A stretch of DNA of 64,000 nucleotides, taken from IMG/VR virus record IMGVR_UViG_3300046005_000547, positions 1-64,000 of that record, one strand, 5' to 3'. Shown piece after piece: positions 413-36,267 of the stretch; position 1 is the first letter of the stretch; every line of letters starts with the position of its first letter. The position numbers and the translations under genes were made by a program. Below the pieces are notes generated by a model, which saw only the letters and a program-made list of their open reading frames with translations, ran no database searches and had not been told where the DNA came from.

Positions 413-1795
413 TTATTTATGAATAATACAATTATGCGTAGCTCTACTACAAGCCACATAAAAACTTCTTAATGATTCTTCTTTGTTATGATTACAGAAA
501 ATGTCTTTGGCATGAACTATAACATTTGAATAAGTGGAACCCTGAGAACGATGAGAAGTAATACAATACACTTGTCGAATATCTGTAAAGTGTTTTTGTA
601 CAAGATAGAACAATTCCCAGTTGATTCCAAACATATTAGTTCTAGCACATGTTGACATAAATTCAGTCAACATCTTCAATTCATTCTTATCTGCTGGAAT
701 AACAAATGAATGTCTCGATTTGTCTGATAATTTACATGTAACTAGATATCTCCTGACAACATGTTTAGTAAATATCCATCCTTTGGATATTTGTCTCTGA
801 TTTGGTTCATATACAAATGGTTCGATTTCCTCTAAGGATACAATACTCGCTTCTGTTTCAGTTGGGCAGATAATCTTATCCCATCCTTCATACATGATTT
901 GATTCTTATTGAATTCGACAAATGTACTCACAGTATGCATCGGTTTAGAGAACGCAAAATGTTCACCAATTGCAAATGGTTTGTCCAAATTGGGATACCT
1001 AATCTTCTGTATAGTTTCATTGAACCAATCAACTGTCTTATTACGCCAAGCAATTACTCTAATTAAATCAGGATCTGAATCAAACTTTGGATCTGTAAAT
1101 GCATGGTAGATAATGTTCATCATTTCATGATTATCAACTTCATGAACTCCGATATCTCCAATTTCATTGGTCTTTGTTTCAACTGCAGGCATCTTGTATA
1201 CATTATTATCTAATTGATGCCTAATGGTTGTACACAAATCAAGAATCGGATTACCATGTTTCTGTCTGATGACTTCAGTTAGATAGATCTTATTGTCGAT
1301 ATTAAATGTAGGAGATTCAGTTTCATTCACTGGATTCAACTGATTGTTATCTCCCATGAATATAACTTTGGCATTAGATGAGAACATAACGCCTTTGTTA
1401 ATGTAATCAAACAATTCCGAATCAACCATGGACATCTCATCACAGACCACCAAATCAAATTTATCAAATGATGAATTACCACTTGGTGTCAATTTCTCCT
1501 CACCATTTCTATTGATTTTCATTGTCAAACCGAGTAGTGAATGTATCGTTTTACATTCAACATTTAGTCCTCGTTTGATTGACATATTCTTTAGAACTTT
1601 GGTTGCCTTATTAGTGGGAGAGGTAAAACAAATCTTTAATCCTTCTGGTAAATAGTCAAGGAACTCAACAATGACTGAACTTTTACCAGAACCCGCTGGT
1701 CCAATTAAACAAATGTAATCTTCACGCTTGTTACCAACAAACTCCACTAGATTACCGATTGCTCTATTCTGTTGTGATGTTAATACAATTTTCAT
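413..1795 (-). CDS. dda: Dda-like SF1B DNA helicase
   Basis: GPAGSGKS Walker A, SPTNKA, DEMSMVD, GDNNQLNPV, ITSHRSQGSTY, YVACSRA helicase motifs. Confidence 0.92.
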   Translation of the reverse strand: MKIVLTSQQNRAIGNLVEFVGNKREDYICLIGPAGSGKSSVIVEFLDYLPEGLKICFTSPTNKATKVLKNMSIKRGLNVECKTIHSLLGLTMKINRNGEEKLTPSGNSSFDKFDLVVCDEMSMVDSELFDYINKGVMFSSNAKVIFMGDNNQLNPVNETESPTFNIDNKIYLTEVIRQKHGNPILDLCTTIRHQLDNNVYKMPAVETKTNEIGDIGVHEVDNHEMMNIIYHAFTDPKFDSDPDLIRVIAWRNKTVDWFNETIQKIRYPNLDKPFAIGEHFAFSKPMHTVSTFVEFNKNQIMYEGWDKIICPTETEASIVSLEEIEPFVYEPNQRQISKGWIFTKHVVRRYLVTCKLSDKSRHSFVIPADKNELKMLTEFMSTCARTNMFGINWELFYLVQKHFTDIRQVYCITSHRSQGSTYSNVIVHAKDIFCNHNKEESLRSFYVACSRATHNCIIHK

Positions 1796-2882: not shown

Positions 2883-3123
2883 GAATCATCCTTTGTCTAT
2901 ATTTGATTTCTCGATTAACCCAAAATTCAGCAGTTGAACCTAATACATGTTCTAATCTAACTGCCACATTGTATGTTATAGGAACTTCTCCTGATAACAA
3001 TAAACAAATAGAATCATACTGTATTTCCATCAATCTAGCAAACTCTTTATCGTCTATTCCTTTTTCATTGAGTAAATCTTTAATTGTATCTGATGGTGGA
3101 GAATTGTAATCTGGTGTAAACAT
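2875..3123 (-). CDS. HigA-like HTH antitoxin/regulator
   Basis: FTPDYNSPPSDTIKDLL...GEVPITYNVAVRLEHVLGSTAEFW follows the HigA pattern; likely start MFTPDY. Confidence 0.8.
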   Translation of the reverse strand: MFTPDYNSPPSDTIKDLLNEKGIDDKEFARLMEIQYDSICLLLSGEVPITYNVAVRLEHVLGSTAEFWVNREIKYRQRMIHG

Positions 3124-5745: not shown

Positions 5746-6687
5746 ATGGAAAATTTAAAAGATTTTTTATATCAACAATTATCATCCAAATCTAAAAATA
5801 ATTTTTACACTAAGCGATATATCAATTTCATGATTTCTAGAAACGATAAACCAAAAAATGTATATACGGAATTGCATCATATTTTACCAAAAGCGAAAAC
5901 TCAATTTCCAGAATATAAAAATCTTGTAAAATACCCTTGGAATGGGATCGAATTAACTGGACAAGAACATTTTATAGCACATTGGTTATTATGGAAATCG
6001 CAAGGCGGTTTTATGGCATACGCATTTATTGGTATGAGAAGGTGTAATGATTATCAAACTGATAGATATTTTAAAATTAATGGAAAATCGTACGAAAAAT
6101 TAAAAGAAGATGCATCTGCTGCGCAATCTAATAGAATAATTTTAGAATCCACCAGACAAAAGATTTCCATATCAAATAAATCTAGACCAAAAGGTGTGTG
6201 TCCTCATTGTAATATAGAAATGGATATTTCTAATTTAAAAAAATACCATTTAGATAATTGTAAAGTTTTTACTGGTAAATTGGTTCATGATATTAAACAA
6301 AATTTAGAAATAGGGAATTGTCCTCATTGTGGATTAGAAGGTAAAATGCAAGGATTATTGGCAACCCATTTTGACCATTGTCCAAAAATAAATAATTCTA
6401 GGAAAATAACTAAATTTTTTGATTGTCCTCATTGTAATAAAACTTTACCAGATACGCAAAATGTTAGAAATTTACATTTTGATAATTGTACTGTTTTCAC
6501 GGGTATTAAAAGAGAACCTAGTGATAAATTTAAAGCAGCAAATTCAAAAAGAGGTAAACCTGGGGTACCTAAACCAAAAATACAATGCCCTCATTGTAAT
6601 CATATAGGCACCCCAAAACGTATGTTACAAAATCATTTTGATAATTGCATTGCTAAAACAGATTCTAATTTAGATAATTTTATGTAA
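5746..6687 (+). mobile_element. free-standing HNH homing endonuclease with four CxxC-H-C Zn-finger repeats
   Basis: YTELHHILPK...EHFIAHWLLWK HNH domain; four CPHC...H(L/F)D(N/H)C repeats; inverted relative to neighbouring genes. Confidence 0.85.
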
Positions 6688-8964: not shown

Positions 8965-9281
8965 TCAGTATCATTCACAATACCGATTGACATCATTCTA
9001 GTTTTTGGTAGATAAGGTGAAACTTGTGTGTTCTTGAAAACAATCAAAGCATTTGTCCAATTACATCCATCTTCAGAAACTTCAAGTTTAACTGTGAATG
9101 ATTTGTTGACTGAAGAAGCTCTTTCAAGCAATTCTTTAATTGGATGAGCTTGATGTCTGTTGTCTTCTTTGATAATCATTTCAAGAACTTTGTTTTTGTT
9201 TAATTTTGATGCGTTCATTTTATACCACCTTTGTAATTGATTTAGATTGATTTAAGTTCATTGGATTCTTCCAACTTGAAA

Positions 9282-9314
9282 TCTATTATAATGATTTTTC
9301 TTATCATCGAAAGA
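9282..9314 (-). promoter_or_regulatory. early-type promoter TCTTTCGA-N16-TATAATAGA
   Basis: exact motif, one of 7 copies, upstream of a gene start. Confidence 0.8.
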
Positions 9315-9893
9315 AAAATCTTATTAAATTTTAAACAAAAAGAAACCCCAATTCCTAAGAACTGAGGTTTTTGATTATTCTAATTTGAACTTGGTCAATA
9401 ATTGGACGAATTGTACATATTCATCATCTGTTAATTCACCAATTGCTTTATCCAATAGATACGTTGTACTGAAATAGAACAGATTGTTATCTTCATCATA
9501 AAATTCTAATTCGGATTTCATGTCATTGTATAATACTCTATTCATTTTCGAACACCTCATGTATATAATGTAACATTATATAAGAATCGGTTATGTCTGC
9601 TCCATCAACTAGATAAATCGATTTGGATTCATCAATTCCATATACAGAAATCTCAGTTCCTTCCAATTCAACTACCACGGTATCATTCTTCTTGATAACA
9701 TCTAAACATACATCAACTTTCATTTCTTTTACCGTAATCTAAAATAGTGCATTCGCAAATATATAAATTGTATGAACAAATCAACAATGCTTCTTTAATC
9801 CGTTCCGGCGTCATCTTTTCAATAATCTTTGCCCTGTATAATGCATCATTATTACAACCCGTTAATATCAACAACGATAACAATAAAATAAAT

Positions 9894-13164: not shown

Positions 13165-13589
13165 GTTTATTTTGGTTTGAATCCTTCTGTGAACCAGCCA
13201 ACATTCTTAAATTGTTTGTTGATTAGTTCTGCTTTGTAATTGTTTTCAAGTTTCAATGCTGAAGTATGAATAGAAACAAATTGTCTCAAAAATTCTTCAA
13301 ATTTAATTGAAGGAAAATCTTCATCTTCTTTTATCAAATTGAAGAATTCCACCGGTCTCGTGATATACTCTGTTATCTCAAAACGTTTGATTACAATAAT
13401 TTCAAAATAATCATATTCCTCGTTTCTGATTATTGAAATCAATTCAAGACCGTTTGATTTAAAGAAATCCATCCAAGCAATTATATCAGGATTATGTACA
13501 TGTTCAAATCTTTTAAATCGAGAACCATCAGAATTATAAACAGAATACCCAGTTTCTGATTGATATGCTTTCATTTTCATGTTATACTC

Positions 13590-13982
13590 CTATAGTAAAT
13601 CAGCAAATAACAATGCGACACTTAGATACGAAAAACAAGATGAACGTTCTGAAACTTTCCATTCATCACCATCAAACAAATAATTGAATTGTTGTCCATT
13701 GGAAATCATGAATTGTTTGTAAGATTCAATTGAATCAAAATGATTTGGTTTGTTTAAGAACCATGAATCGCCCATATCTCTTGTTCTGAATTCAGATTCA
13801 TCAATAGTTTTACCTAATGATGAAAGATTACCTTTTGAAATCAATTCTTCAACAATTGTTTGATTGTCATAACGTTCAAACAAGATTTTACCATTTGTTG
13901 TTAAATCGCCATCCCAATGACAGAACACTTGCGAAATAGAACCATCTTGTAATTTAACAGAGATTGTAGAATTAGTTGCCAT
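13590..13982 (-). CDS. conserved phage hypothetical protein
   Basis: MAT.S.I...S..VFCHWDG...NGKIL pattern; first gene after a promoter motif. Confidence 0.6.
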   Translation of the reverse strand: MATNSTISVKLQDGSISQVFCHWDGDLTTNGKILFERYDNQTIVEELISKGNLSSLGKTIDESEFRTRDMGDSWFLNKPNHFDSIESYKQFMISNGQQFNYLFDGDEWKVSERSSCFSYLSVALLFADLL

Positions 13983-32497: not shown

Positions 32498-32902
32498 TTA
32501 TTCTGTTAGAAATTGTTTAGTTTTGGTTGACCCAATTTCAATCTTCTTTGGTTTCATTTCATCTGGGATAACTTTTTCAAGTAAGATACTTAAAATGCCA
32601 TTTTCCATTTCAGCCGAAACGACTTTGATGTATTCATGTAATTTGAATTGTCGTTTAAATGATTTGTTTGAAATACCTTTGAAGAAGTATGTTTGTTCAT
32701 CTTTTTCTGCTTGGAACGAAATTGATAATTGATTTTTAGAAAACTCAATATCAATATCTTCCTTAGGAATACCAGCCAAAGCAATTTCAATCATTGTTTT
32801 ATCTTCATCAATTTTTTTCAAATTGAAATGAGGGTATTGATTGTTTTGGTTGTTCAAGATTTCATGGAACAAAAATAATTGGTCGAATTTTGTTGGTAAC
32901 AT
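32498..32902 (-). CDS. small heat-shock protein (Hsp20/IbpA-like)
   Basis: YPHFNL, IEIALAG, YFFKGIS.KSF.RQF.L, AEMENGILSI. Confidence 0.92.
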   Translation of the reverse strand: MLPTKFDQLFLFHEILNNQNNQYPHFNLKKIDEDKTMIEIALAGIPKEDIDIEFSKNQLSISFQAEKDEQTYFFKGISNKSFKRQFKLHEYIKVVSAEMENGILSILLEKVIPDEMKPKKIEIGSTKTKQFLTE

Positions 32903-33070
32903 GTTGAATTTCTCCTTAGAAATTAAGCAAGAATGTTGCGTTTAGAGTTGTTCTACAACGCGTGTTAAAATGATTCTGGTCACTGTTCCAGAGACTTCTT
33001 ATAGTAAAGTCAGATAATCCCAAGGATTCACTCTCTAGATCCCTCTAGAAGATTCATCCTTGATTTTATT
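32903..33070 (-). promoter_or_regulatory. ROSE-like RNA thermometer leader of hsp20
   Basis: UUCUUGCUUA-loop-UAAGGAGAA hairpin places UUGCU opposite the SD with a bulged G; several further hairpins lie upstream. Confidence 0.65.
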
Positions 33071-33735
33071 TAGTCATTTAAACCAATTCCGAATCATTGG
33101 CAGATTCAACTGGTTTATCTTTAATTTGAGGAATTCCTTGTTGTCTAATATTGGTAATCAATTCATGAACTTCTTCAAATGGTCGTTTTGCCAATGCATC
33201 TAACACTTGATTCACTTGGTCTAATTCTAGTTCTAATTTAATCATATTCTATCCTAATTCAATAATCATACTATGTTGAAATAATCTTAATTCTCTATAC
33301 ATCATTTCTTTGATGTTCTTGTCCATAAACGAGGAATCATCAATAAAGATTTTATCGAATTTACATCCTCTCAATCTATCTCTAATGACTTCTTCTGAAG
33401 TGAACACTCTTTTGATTCCATTATATAGGAAATTTCGTATAGTTGGATTATTGACGATAATAACATCTTTTTCTGTAATCAACTCTTTGATGATAGAAGT
33501 CTTAAATGTGCATCTACCAATATCCAATTTCAATACGTTATTACCACAAACTGGTAATCTAGAATCAATTGAATTTTCACTTCTTTTAATGAATTTCTCT
33601 TTCAATGAAATTGCTTGTTTCACTAAGTTCAAACTCAACAGATATAGATCTTCAGATTCTTGTGGTCTTTCTGTATTCAATTTTTCAAATAACAGATAAT
33701 CAGGGCCTTTTGATGTATCCAATTCAATTGTAATT

Positions 33736-34206
33736 TTAGCCATTACATTCACCACCACATTGTTTATAAAATGCCAATAATGTTTTCATTGGAACTGTAT
33801 GTTGTCCGTACCTAGATTTACCCGTTTTTGGATCTGGGAAACTCGCCCAGATATTACAACATTTACCGATAGCAGTTTGGAAATCGCCGTTCTCAATATC
33901 TTGAATTGCCTTACGTTCTTTGATTTGCTGGATGGCAATTTTGTCTTGAGAATCAGGGCTGAAATCCAACAATCCTAATTGTCTACGGTAAGCGTCGTAA
34001 TACTTACTCAACAACTGGTAACGACCTGCTGCAGTCGAAGATAATGTTGGATTCAATTTAATCAATTTTCTTGGATGGTCTGCATAAGATTTGAATTGAC
34101 TACCACCAACAATTGTATTGTACCCTTTGTTTGGATATCTATCAGTTCCTTCAGAATGACTGATTGTATCCAGAAACGCTTTCATATTTTTACTAATTTC
34201 ACTCAT
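33736..34206 (-). CDS. endolysin, lambda R-like (GH104) lytic transglycosylase
   Basis: AFLDTI..SEGT, HPR, STAAGRYQ, FSPDSQD, WASFP, YGQ. Confidence 0.9.
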   Translation of the reverse strand: MSEISKNMKAFLDTISHSEGTDRYPNKGYNTIVGGSQFKSYADHPRKLIKLNPTLSSTAAGRYQLLSKYYDAYRRQLGLLDFSPDSQDKIAIQQIKERKAIQDIENGDFQTAIGKCCNIWASFPDPKTGKSRYGQHTVPMKTLLAFYKQCGGECNG

Positions 34207-34215
34207 GATATAATG

Positions 34216-34623
34216 TTATCTCCGAAGATTGTTACCTAATGTATATTTTTGAGTCAATTTCCATTCAGACTTTTCTTTATGGGATAAAATCTTAATGTGA
34301 CTGATATTACATAAATCCGTTTTTACTTCAGGAATTTTAATCAATTCCCATTCTTCCAATAATCTCGCTATTGTATTACGTCGTTTAATATCATCATATT
34401 CAATATCTGTTCTTCTACCATCAAGATAAAATAATTCCTTGAAATGTACAATATAATACAATCCTTGTTTATGTAAAATATGACATGATTGAAATAATTC
34501 TTTTGTTTTTCTGGAAGCAATACCAATTCTGGTGAGTGTTTCTTTACATTTCAAAAAAGAATCATCGTCAATCAGTTCAATCCGTAACATGTCCTTTCTT
34601 GAATATCTATATTCATTATCCAT
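34216..34623 (-). CDS. regA: RegA translational repressor
   Basis: FLKCKETLTRIGIAS...LFQSCHILHKQGLYYIVHFKELF. Confidence 0.95.
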   Translation of the reverse strand: MDNEYRYSRKDMLRIELIDDDSFLKCKETLTRIGIASRKTKELFQSCHILHKQGLYYIVHFKELFYLDGRRTDIEYDDIKRRNTIARLLEEWELIKIPEVKTDLCNISHIKILSHKEKSEWKLTQKYTLGNNLRR

Positions 34624-34664: not shown

Positions 34665-35054
34665 TTACTTTGTTTTACCACCAGTGTACATCTTCTGACG
34701 AATTACATCTAATTGTTCTTTTGTTAAAATGGATAAAGCAATTTCAGCTTTTTTATGATTGAATCCATAATACTCTTGAATCAATTTAATATCATCTGTT
34801 GATTCAGATTTTTTTGACCATTTTGAAAAACGTTTCTTCTTCTTAATTGAATTTAACAAGAAATCATTTATCATCTTCTTTGACAATTCTGGCTTACCAT
34901 TCATCTCATTGGCTTGTAGGACAGTATCAGTGTAATATGATAATCCTCTTAATATCATGAATGTTGGAAATGCTTTTATAGATTCATCATCAACCAATAG
35001 ATCTTGTTTTGTATTATTGATTGCATCTAAGAATTCAAATAATCCTGTTGACAT
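34665..35054 (-). CDS. 62: clamp loader small subunit gp62
   Basis: FMILRGLSY..DTVL.ANEMN...KKKRFSKW; position in the operon. Confidence 0.9.
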   Translation of the reverse strand: MSTGLFEFLDAINNTKQDLLVDDESIKAFPTFMILRGLSYYTDTVLQANEMNGKPELSKKMINDFLLNSIKKKKRFSKWSKKSESTDDIKLIQEYYGFNHKKAEIALSILTKEQLDVIRQKMYTGGKTK

Positions 35055-35316: not shown

Positions 35317-36267
35317 TTATTTAAATACACAACTAGACATAATCTCAACCATTGATGCCATGATATTCAATTCAGCATCAGCAACAAATGCTGCTTTATG
35401 TTGATAATCAGCTAGAATGAGAATCAATTGCGGTATTGATTGTGGTTCAAAATACATTGATGAGTTCTCATAGAAATCTCTGAACAAGGCAACAGAATCT
35501 GTATCATTTGTTCCAACCCATTTTCTTACTTCAGTGAAATTCTTTGCTTTCAGGAATGCAACTAATTCTTTATAGGAATCAGCAGATTGATTGATAAGAA
35601 TTCCTGTATCAATTTTACCAGAAACAGAGTAACGTTGTAATTCATTTAGAATCTTTCTAAAATCAGGAAAATGTTTGGTTACAACTTCGGCGACTACTTT
35701 AGGATCAAATTCAATTTGTTCCTGTTTAAGAATTTCAGTAGTTCGTTTGAAGAATTTGGCGGCTAATGCTTGTTTTTCATCTTTATCAACCACATAATCA
35801 ACATTGACTAATCTGCTGTGTAATGGAGCAGATAATTTTGATTTTGTATTACATGTTAAGATGAATCTACAATTTGATGAGAATGTTTCAATCTGAGCAC
35901 GTAATGCATTTTGGAATGCCGAAGTTGTGGCATCAGATTCGTCTAAGATGATAATCTTTTTACCGTCACCGAACGACACTGTTGACGCAAACTGTTCAAT
36001 TTTGACTCTAAGAGTTTCAATACCATTTTCAAGACTACTGTTAATGAATAATACATCAGCGTCTAATTCATTACATAAAGCCCAAGCAGCGGTGGTCTTA
36101 CCAGAACCTTGTATTCCACTTAGAAGTAAATTTGGAATCTCACCCTTGGACACAATATCCTTAAACATTGATTTCATTTTTTCTGGTAATATACATTCAT
36201 CAATTTTTGACGGTCTGTATTTCTGACTCCATAAAAATTCATCTTCATTTGTAGTTAATTCACTCAT
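35317..36267 (-). CDS. 44: clamp loader large subunit gp44
   Basis: LWSQKYRPSKIDECILP, GSGKTT, ILDESD, SRL, FPDFR. Confidence 0.95.
   Translation of the reverse strand: MSELTTNEDEFLWSQKYRPSKIDECILPEKMKSMFKDIVSKGEIPNLLLSGIQGSGKTTAAWALCNELDADVLFINSSLENGIETLRVKIEQFASTVSFGDGKKIIILDESDATTSAFQNALRAQIETFSSNCRFILTCNTKSKLSAPLHSRLVNVDYVVDKDEKQALAAKFFKRTTEILKQEQIEFDPKVVAEVVTKHFPDFRKILNELQRYSVSGKIDTGILINQSADSYKELVAFLKAKNFTEVRKWVGTNDTDSVALFRDFYENSSMYFEPQSIPQLILILADYQHKAAFVADAELNIMASMVEIMSSCVFK

Follow-up and report, generated by a model that had tools for sequence, protein, structure and literature searches.

The untranslated leader of a small heat-shock gene (hsp20) in a lake phage carries a predicted hairpin masking the ribosome binding site, with the geometry of the ROSE-like RNA thermometers that bacteria place in front of small heat-shock genes. 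Leaders with the same motif precede hsp20, dnaK and groES genes on many other viral contigs, and comparison with them supports the pairing as a real, conserved, previously unannotated structure. By analogy with the bacterial elements, phages probably gate the synthesis of their chaperones by temperature, although this function is inferred and rests on no experiment. [quoted passage not shown] Its interpretation as a ROSE-type thermometer with which a phage captured or kept temperature-gated translation of Hsp20 was only partly supported: geometry, register and conservation hold, while temperature gating remains an analogy and the Rfam thresholds for ROSE are not reached.

The hsp20 leader and its predicted structures

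The window analysed here comprises the first 64,000 nucleotides of a 234,735-bp IMG/VR phage genome with direct terminal repeats and 31.5% G+C, assembled from lake-water metagenomes. The region is a T4-type replication module, containing clamp loader gp44 (35317-36267), gp62 (34665-35054), RegA (34216-34623, Pfam 3.5e-43) and an endolysin-like gene (33736-34206), followed by two small ORFs and then by hsp20. The features of the leader, all on the minus strand, are these:

32498..32902 (-), hsp20, IbpA-type small heat-shock protein of 134 aa (Pfam HSP20, 4.5e-15), the gene that the leader would regulate; ATG at 32902-32900
32910..32933 (-), predicted ROSE-like hairpin (fold A): 5' arm UUCUUGCUUA (UUCUU-G-CUUA, 32933-32924, bulged G at 32928), loop AUUUC (32923-32919), 3' arm UAAGGAGAA (32918-32910) holding the SD AAGGAG (32917-32912), then AUUCAAC and the ATG
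32898..32937 (-), predicted competing fold B, specific to this lineage: AAUUUCU (32924-32918) with AGAAAUU (32913-32907), loop AAGG, extended by UUG/CAA and by AACAU (32937-32933) with AUGUU (32902-32898), which would also pair the start codon
32938..32961 (-), predicted hairpin equivalent to hairpin I of the family (GCGUU-G-UAGA, loop ACAAC, UCUA-AACGC)
32975..32992 (-), predicted hairpin UCUGG-AACAGUGA-CCAGA followed by AUCAUUUUAA, a leader hairpin or a weak terminator-like site
32993..33011 (-), predicted hairpin GACUUU-ACUAUAA-GAAGUC in the fully conserved block CTTTACTATAAGAAG
33021..33062 (-), strong predicted hairpin of about 20 bp directly after the stop codon (33078-33080) of the upstream 55-aa ORF, possibly a transcript 3' end or a processing or stability element

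In fold A nine pairs can form (U-A, U-A, C-G, U-A, U-G, then C-G, U-A, U-A, A-U) with G32928 unpaired, UUGCU (32930-32926) lies opposite AAGGAG, and the motif ends 8 nt before the ATG. Its predicted energy is -3.0 kcal/mol at 37 C and -4.9 at 25 C. Four more hairpins are predicted between the upstream stop codon and fold A, and four between 33011 and 32910, two of them with supporting substitutions, although the number actually present in the leader depends on a transcript 5' end that is not mapped. The whole intergenic region folds better than all 200 shuffles (z = -3.28).

Taken by itself, however, the site is weak and not beyond chance. The Rfam covariance search, which had been named beforehand as a test, aligned the leader to ROSE_3 (RF02523) in exactly the expected register, but at 15.5 bits (E 0.33 on 131 nt) against a gathering score of 43. 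ROSE (RF00435) and ROSE_2 (RF01832) gave no match at E<=10, and the other sub-threshold Rfam hits (plastid UTR motifs, snoRNAs) are noise. With the whole genome as search space ROSE_3 returned nothing at E<=10, while all 14 control genomes gave sub-threshold matches, so weak ROSE_3 hits alone mean little. Against 390 crude gene calls of the same genome, SD pairing of hsp20 is at the median and pairing of the whole ribosome binding site is in the top 9-13%, and single-sequence folding is not diagnostic. A strict descriptor hits only this site in the 234.7-kb genome, but 0.35 hits are expected by chance. UUUGCU...AGGAG also lies at 13581-13606 (-) before a 137-aa ORF of unknown function (13167-13580), and the count of such core motifs is within chance expectation (3 found, 3.8 expected). 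Moreover, fold B is the minimum-energy fold at 0-50 C and takes 0.81-0.98 of the ensemble, against 0.02-0.16 for fold A, and the predicted opening of the SD stays costly up to 50 C.

Scans of the leader for promoters and terminators found no sigma-70-like site on the minus strand, one weak terminator-like hairpin and no TATAAATA, although relatives have one. Comparison by eye with the heat-shock sigma-32 consensus gave no convincing match, and the candidate is not conserved in the related phage described below. In the whole genome TATAAATA occurs only 11 times, against about 94 expected from base composition, and 6 of the 11 lie within 150 nt upstream of called gene starts, which fits a T4-type late promoter that is avoided elsewhere. 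Among the contigs of public runs, one of 269 nt from an RNA library spans 32774-33038, but it cannot show a start, a strand or transcription.

Occurrence and conservation of the motif

A nucleotide search of the locus against 50,697 phage records gave no match, and close relatives came from IMG/VR, where only three contigs were found; a word-index protein search found only one relative above 42% identity. In a related phage contig (L007), whose Hsp20 is 83% identical, the leader is conserved (81.6% over 662 aligned bases spanning the leader and the hsp20 coding sequence) although the upstream gene differs, conservation beginning at ACTAAATAAAA. An extra small ORF (680-860, minus strand) is inserted in L007 between the homologue of the 55-aa ORF and the hsp20 leader, and a hairpin of different sequence lies at the place of 33021-33062; the leader behaves as a unit with hsp20. 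The differences in L007 and in lake strains seen in public runs fall in loops or linkers, apart from a compensatory double change in the hairpin at 33011-32993, where pair A33010-U32994 is U-A in L007. That hairpin, whose loop holds TATAAG, may be an RNA hairpin, a promoter region, or both. In the hairpin at 32938-32961 the differences fall in the loop only, and in that at 32975-32992 loop position 32981 varies (G in the window, C in L007, A in lake strains) while the stem is kept. None of the differences lies in 32903-32934. This supports a structured leader but cannot separate the two folds, because both are kept.

More distant relatives decide which pairing is the conserved one. T4-like contigs whose Hsp20 is only about 41% identical, in the same gp44-gp62-regA...gp43 neighbourhood, read TATAAATA, a hairpin, the 12-mer AUUCUUGCUUAA, AUAA, AAGGAGA and AUG. 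We scanned IMG/VR for TTCTTGCTT-N3-12-AAGGAG and obtained 119 matches, of which 36 lie 4-9 nt before an Hsp20 ATG, 7 before DnaK (Pfam 1.7e-256) and 1 before GroES (1.4e-30), that is, 44 before chaperone genes. The same scan of one genome per prokaryote species gave 120 matches, of which 1 lies before an Hsp20 (Fisher p = 1e-14). The GroES (Cpn10) gene, at 9172-9549 (-) of a contig (L121) classed as viral, has the leader UUCUUGCUU...AAGGAG; whether of phage or host DNA, this contig is the only groES case among the 119 matches. To remove the bias of the pattern, viral loci were also fetched by protein alone. Of 80 Hsp20 loci, 55 (strict pattern) to 70 (relaxed pattern) have U(U/C)GCU a few bases before the SD, as do 54 of 56 distinct DnaK leaders, and 72 of 80 DnaK loci carry a second copy on the hsp20 that follows. 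Many freshwater viral contigs (L017:685-3162, L092, L100 and L340-L419) carry a dnaK-hsp20 cassette in which each gene has its own ROSE-like leader, mostly behind GATAAATA or TATAAATA; in L017, MazG lies before the cassette and a ClpS-like gene after it.

The single cellular match before hsp20 lies in a genuine contig of a marine alphaproteobacterial genome ('Rickettsiales') assembled from a metagenome (5899-5988), but only 2 of 61 of its relatives have the pattern; no host can be named. This leader also gives a sub-threshold hit to Rfam freshwater-2 RNA (RF02980; 24.2 bits against 49.9), whose consensus likewise ends in AAGGAGAAAA..AUG and which was not seen on the 11 phage loci scanned for it.

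The usual architecture in the family is a promoter-like NATAAATA or TTGACA-N17-TATAAT, then a G+C-rich hairpin I with a UUCG or GNRA loop, then 5-9 nt, then hairpin II. On relatives RNAalifold predicts CUY-(G)-CUW / WAG-GAG. Alignments of whole leaders with MAFFT misalign the SD because loop lengths differ, and we therefore used anchored counts and a subset with equal spacing. The helix ends covary: the outer pair is C-G 20, U-A 12, A-U 5 and U-G 4 (42 of 63 paired against 25.9 in shuffles), and the inner pair is A-U 19 and U-A 16 (35 of 44 against 21.8). Separate counts agree, with 95.8% against 89.5% and 92.4% against 84.0% of cells paired and 38 against 16.5 cells changed on both sides; 0 of 500 shuffles reach these values, and slid controls give 52-71%. 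Cyanophage S-TIM5 has a variant leader 60 nt before hsp20, in which the SD itself is changed to GGUGG and the anti-SD follows it, CCAC(G)CUU pairing with AAGGUGG. All 104 distinct leaders kept by the motif anchor have G at the bulged position, but the anchor itself requires that G, and among the 56 DnaK leaders chosen by protein alone one (L414) has A there; the non-canonical geometry cannot be seen from sequence.

ROSE_3 hits phage leaders repeatedly in the right place but below threshold: Melnitz 34.1 bits, Atu_ph07 28.0, a dnaK leader (L014) 23.9, S-RIM32 19.1, S-CREM1 19.0 and Syn19 17.5. Its hairpin I consensus, GAUGCCGAA..CGGGUC, matches phage hairpin I. As a control, the validated E. 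coli ibpA leader scores 100.4 bits against ROSE_2 but only 20.8 against ROSE_3. The Rfam models are narrow, and a sub-threshold score does not exclude the class. A covariance model (R1) built from 24 phage leaders, with the window excluded, finds the hsp20 leader (32900-32937) as the single hit in the 234.7-kb genome (20.8 bits, E 0.011-0.016; next best 12.2 bits). It matches only the hairpin II half, since hairpin I of the window lacks the UGCC...GGG motif of typical family members. R1 scores L007 at 27.4 bits, the marine bacterial leader at 41.4 and, weakly, the leaders of E. coli ibpA (14.3) and ibpB (14.5, at 2896-2957, minus strand, of the E. coli locus).

Interpretation and alternative readings

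We think that the hsp20 leader ends in a ROSE-like hairpin that would act as a thermometer, with a probability of roughly 0.62. In this view the anti-SD pairs imperfectly with the SD at low temperature, with G32928 bulged, and this closed hairpin, or its local competitor fold B, hides the ribosome binding site; warming would melt the weak, A/U-rich helix, so that 30S subunits could bind and Hsp20 be made. The analysis itself demonstrates the motif and its register, its membership of a large family of leaders on phage hsp20, dnaK and groES genes with a short two-hairpin architecture, often directly behind a T4-type late promoter NATAAATA, and selection on the helix, as seen in the covarying helix ends and, within the limits of the anchor, the bulged G. 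That the helix forms in vivo in this leader, that it represses translation, that temperature is the signal and that 30S binding rises with it are inferences. Capture of the element from a host is plausible on sequence grounds alone, since hairpin I of the phage family matches the ROSE_3 consensus and one marine alphaproteobacterial hsp20 has the same leader.

The conserved hairpin could also mask the ribosome site without sensing temperature, either setting a constitutively low translation rate or being opened or closed by a factor, such as a phage or host protein like the RegA translational repressor encoded 1.3 kb upstream, an RNA helicase, ribosomal protein S1, or an RNase that cuts GGAG. 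Covariation shows a helix and not what opens it, RegA is encoded in this module here and in relatives, the predicted opening cost changes little between 10 and 42 C, and lake and ocean hosts seldom meet 37-42 C. A hairpin as stable as that of E. coli looks too stable for lake temperatures, unless the non-canonical pairs weaken it or ribosomes and other factors help, and this keeps a temperature-independent attenuator alive as a reading. We nevertheless consider it unlikely. The same leader occurs across phages of cyanobacteria, Pelagibacter, Methylophilales and Agrobacterium and in a bacterial hsp20, which argues for a mechanism that needs no factor; it is also restricted to chaperone genes, and its geometry and predicted energy equal those of validated thermometers.

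It is more doubtful still that in this particular phage fold B is the working structure, a generic hairpin occluding SD and AUG, with the UUGCU/SD complementarity an inherited relic. Fold B is favoured by the energy model and its 7-bp core is kept in L007 through an indel plus a substitution. But it is absent from the wider family, where the ROSE-like helix covaries, its AUG-pairing extension is lost in L007, energy models do not score the non-canonical pairs that characterise ROSE hairpins (PMC3669281), and the anti-SD 12-mer is kept at 41% protein identity. As fold B also masks the ribosome site, the qualitative outcome would be the same. A DNA signal in place of an RNA structure is very unlikely. 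TGCTT is the core of the T4 MotA box and the TTGCTT core lies in a replication-gene module, but the T/C variation at the position before GC and the compensatory changes with bases flanking the SD fit RNA pairing and not a DNA box, a promoter here would start inside the coding region, and in most relatives the promoters lie upstream of hairpin I. No MotA domain was found in the genome, in a search without a positive control. Chance resemblance in an A/U-rich leader, to which the weak single-sequence statistics would point (including fold z-scores between -2.4 and +0.5 for the short leaders of the window and three relatives), is contradicted by the enrichment before chaperone genes, the conservation at 41% protein identity, the covariation and the single genome-wide hit of R1.

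Literature searches found no description of ROSE elements in phages, and a published Rfam annotation of S-CREM1 lists four RNAs without its hsp20 leader. RNA thermometers of the ROSE class are described for small heat-shock genes of alpha- and gamma-proteobacteria, whereas the present data put the motif on hundreds of phage contigs and on the cultured phages Syn19, P-RSM4, S-CREM1, S-RIM32, Melnitz and Atu_ph07, extend it to dnaK and groES and bring it into phages whose hosts are cyanobacteria. It is tempting to propose, as a hypothesis about as likely as not, that a phage-borne clade of ROSE-like thermometers missed by Rfam thresholds gates translation of a whole chaperone set (hsp20, dnaK, groES) in T4-like and other phages of cyanobacteria and proteobacteria, often directly behind late promoters. 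Lytic phages would then sense temperature in cis, independently of the host heat-shock regulon, and make their own chaperones only when virion assembly is at risk from heat. This would be the first ROSE-like control of dnaK and groES, and the first to work in cyanobacterial hosts. If the leaders do sense temperature, abundant aquatic phages carry a built-in, host-independent switch for proteostasis, which bears on how infection yield responds to warming water. The family also offers a large natural series of short thermometers with graded stability for biophysics and synthetic biology. In practice, the ROSE models of Rfam are too narrow, and a new family model would annotate these leaders in phage genomes.

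Comparison with known RNA thermometers

The closest known systems are the short ROSE-like thermometers of Pseudomonas ibpA (ROSE_3; Krajewski et al. 2013, PMC3669281). The literature defines the ROSE-like class by a U(U/C)GCU anti-SD, paired imperfectly with the SD in the 3'-proximal hairpin of small heat-shock leaders, a conserved G bulged opposite the SD with non-canonical pairs, two to four hairpins in the leader, and translation and 30S binding that rise with temperature. The phage family shares with the Pseudomonas elements a leader of about 60 nt with two hairpins, a stable G+C-rich hairpin I with the GAUGCCG...CGGGUC consensus, a hairpin II in which U(U/C)GCU would pair imperfectly with the SD and leave a G bulged, an unpaired AUG and an IbpA-type gene. 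It differs in scoring below the family threshold (window 15.5 bits, best phage leader 34.1), in a consensus N-C-U-Y-G-C-U-W with A/U-rich flanks and not G-C clamps, in promoters of phage late or sigma-70 type and not sigma-32, and in occurring also on dnaK and groES. The leader of the window is longer and its hairpin I is atypical. The class is described from alpha- and gamma-proteobacteria and this element is on a lake phage, with relatives on phages of cyanobacteria, Methylophilales, Pelagibacter and Agrobacterium, but this is a distribution and not a mechanistic criterion.

The E. coli ibpA element (ROSE_2) reads ACAUUCUCGCUGAUUUCAGGAG, against ACAUUCUUGCUUAAUUUCUAAGGAG in the window. Register, bulged G and U-rich loop are the same, and so is the predicted hairpin energy (-2.9 in E. 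coli against -3.0 kcal/mol at 37 C, and -4.8 against -4.9 at 25 C). However, the window gives no ROSE_2 hit, and E. coli has three hairpins of unrelated sequence and a host sigma-32 promoter. The classical ROSE of rhizobia (ROSE1 of Bradyrhizobium hspA; RF00435) has three to four hairpins, with the SD in the last one and a U(U/C)GCU anti-SD (PMC3669281). The leader of the window may hold four, but the upstream hairpins are unrelated in sequence and RF00435 gives no hit.

Thermometers of other classes occur in phages, such as the fourU element in the blyA leader of prophage SPbeta (PMC10586365). Another is that of lambda cIII. In both, translation of a phage gene depends on a temperature-labile leader structure, but they belong to different structural classes, regulate other genes (lysis, lysogeny), and neither is ROSE-like or sits on a chaperone gene. 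Finally, the cyanobacterial hsp17-type thermometers (PMC4152365, PMC4477652) control small heat-shock genes in the hosts of many phages that carry this element. They are a single short hairpin with an internal bulge and no U(U/C)GCU motif, whereas the cyanophage hsp20 leaders follow the proteobacterial ROSE-like plan.
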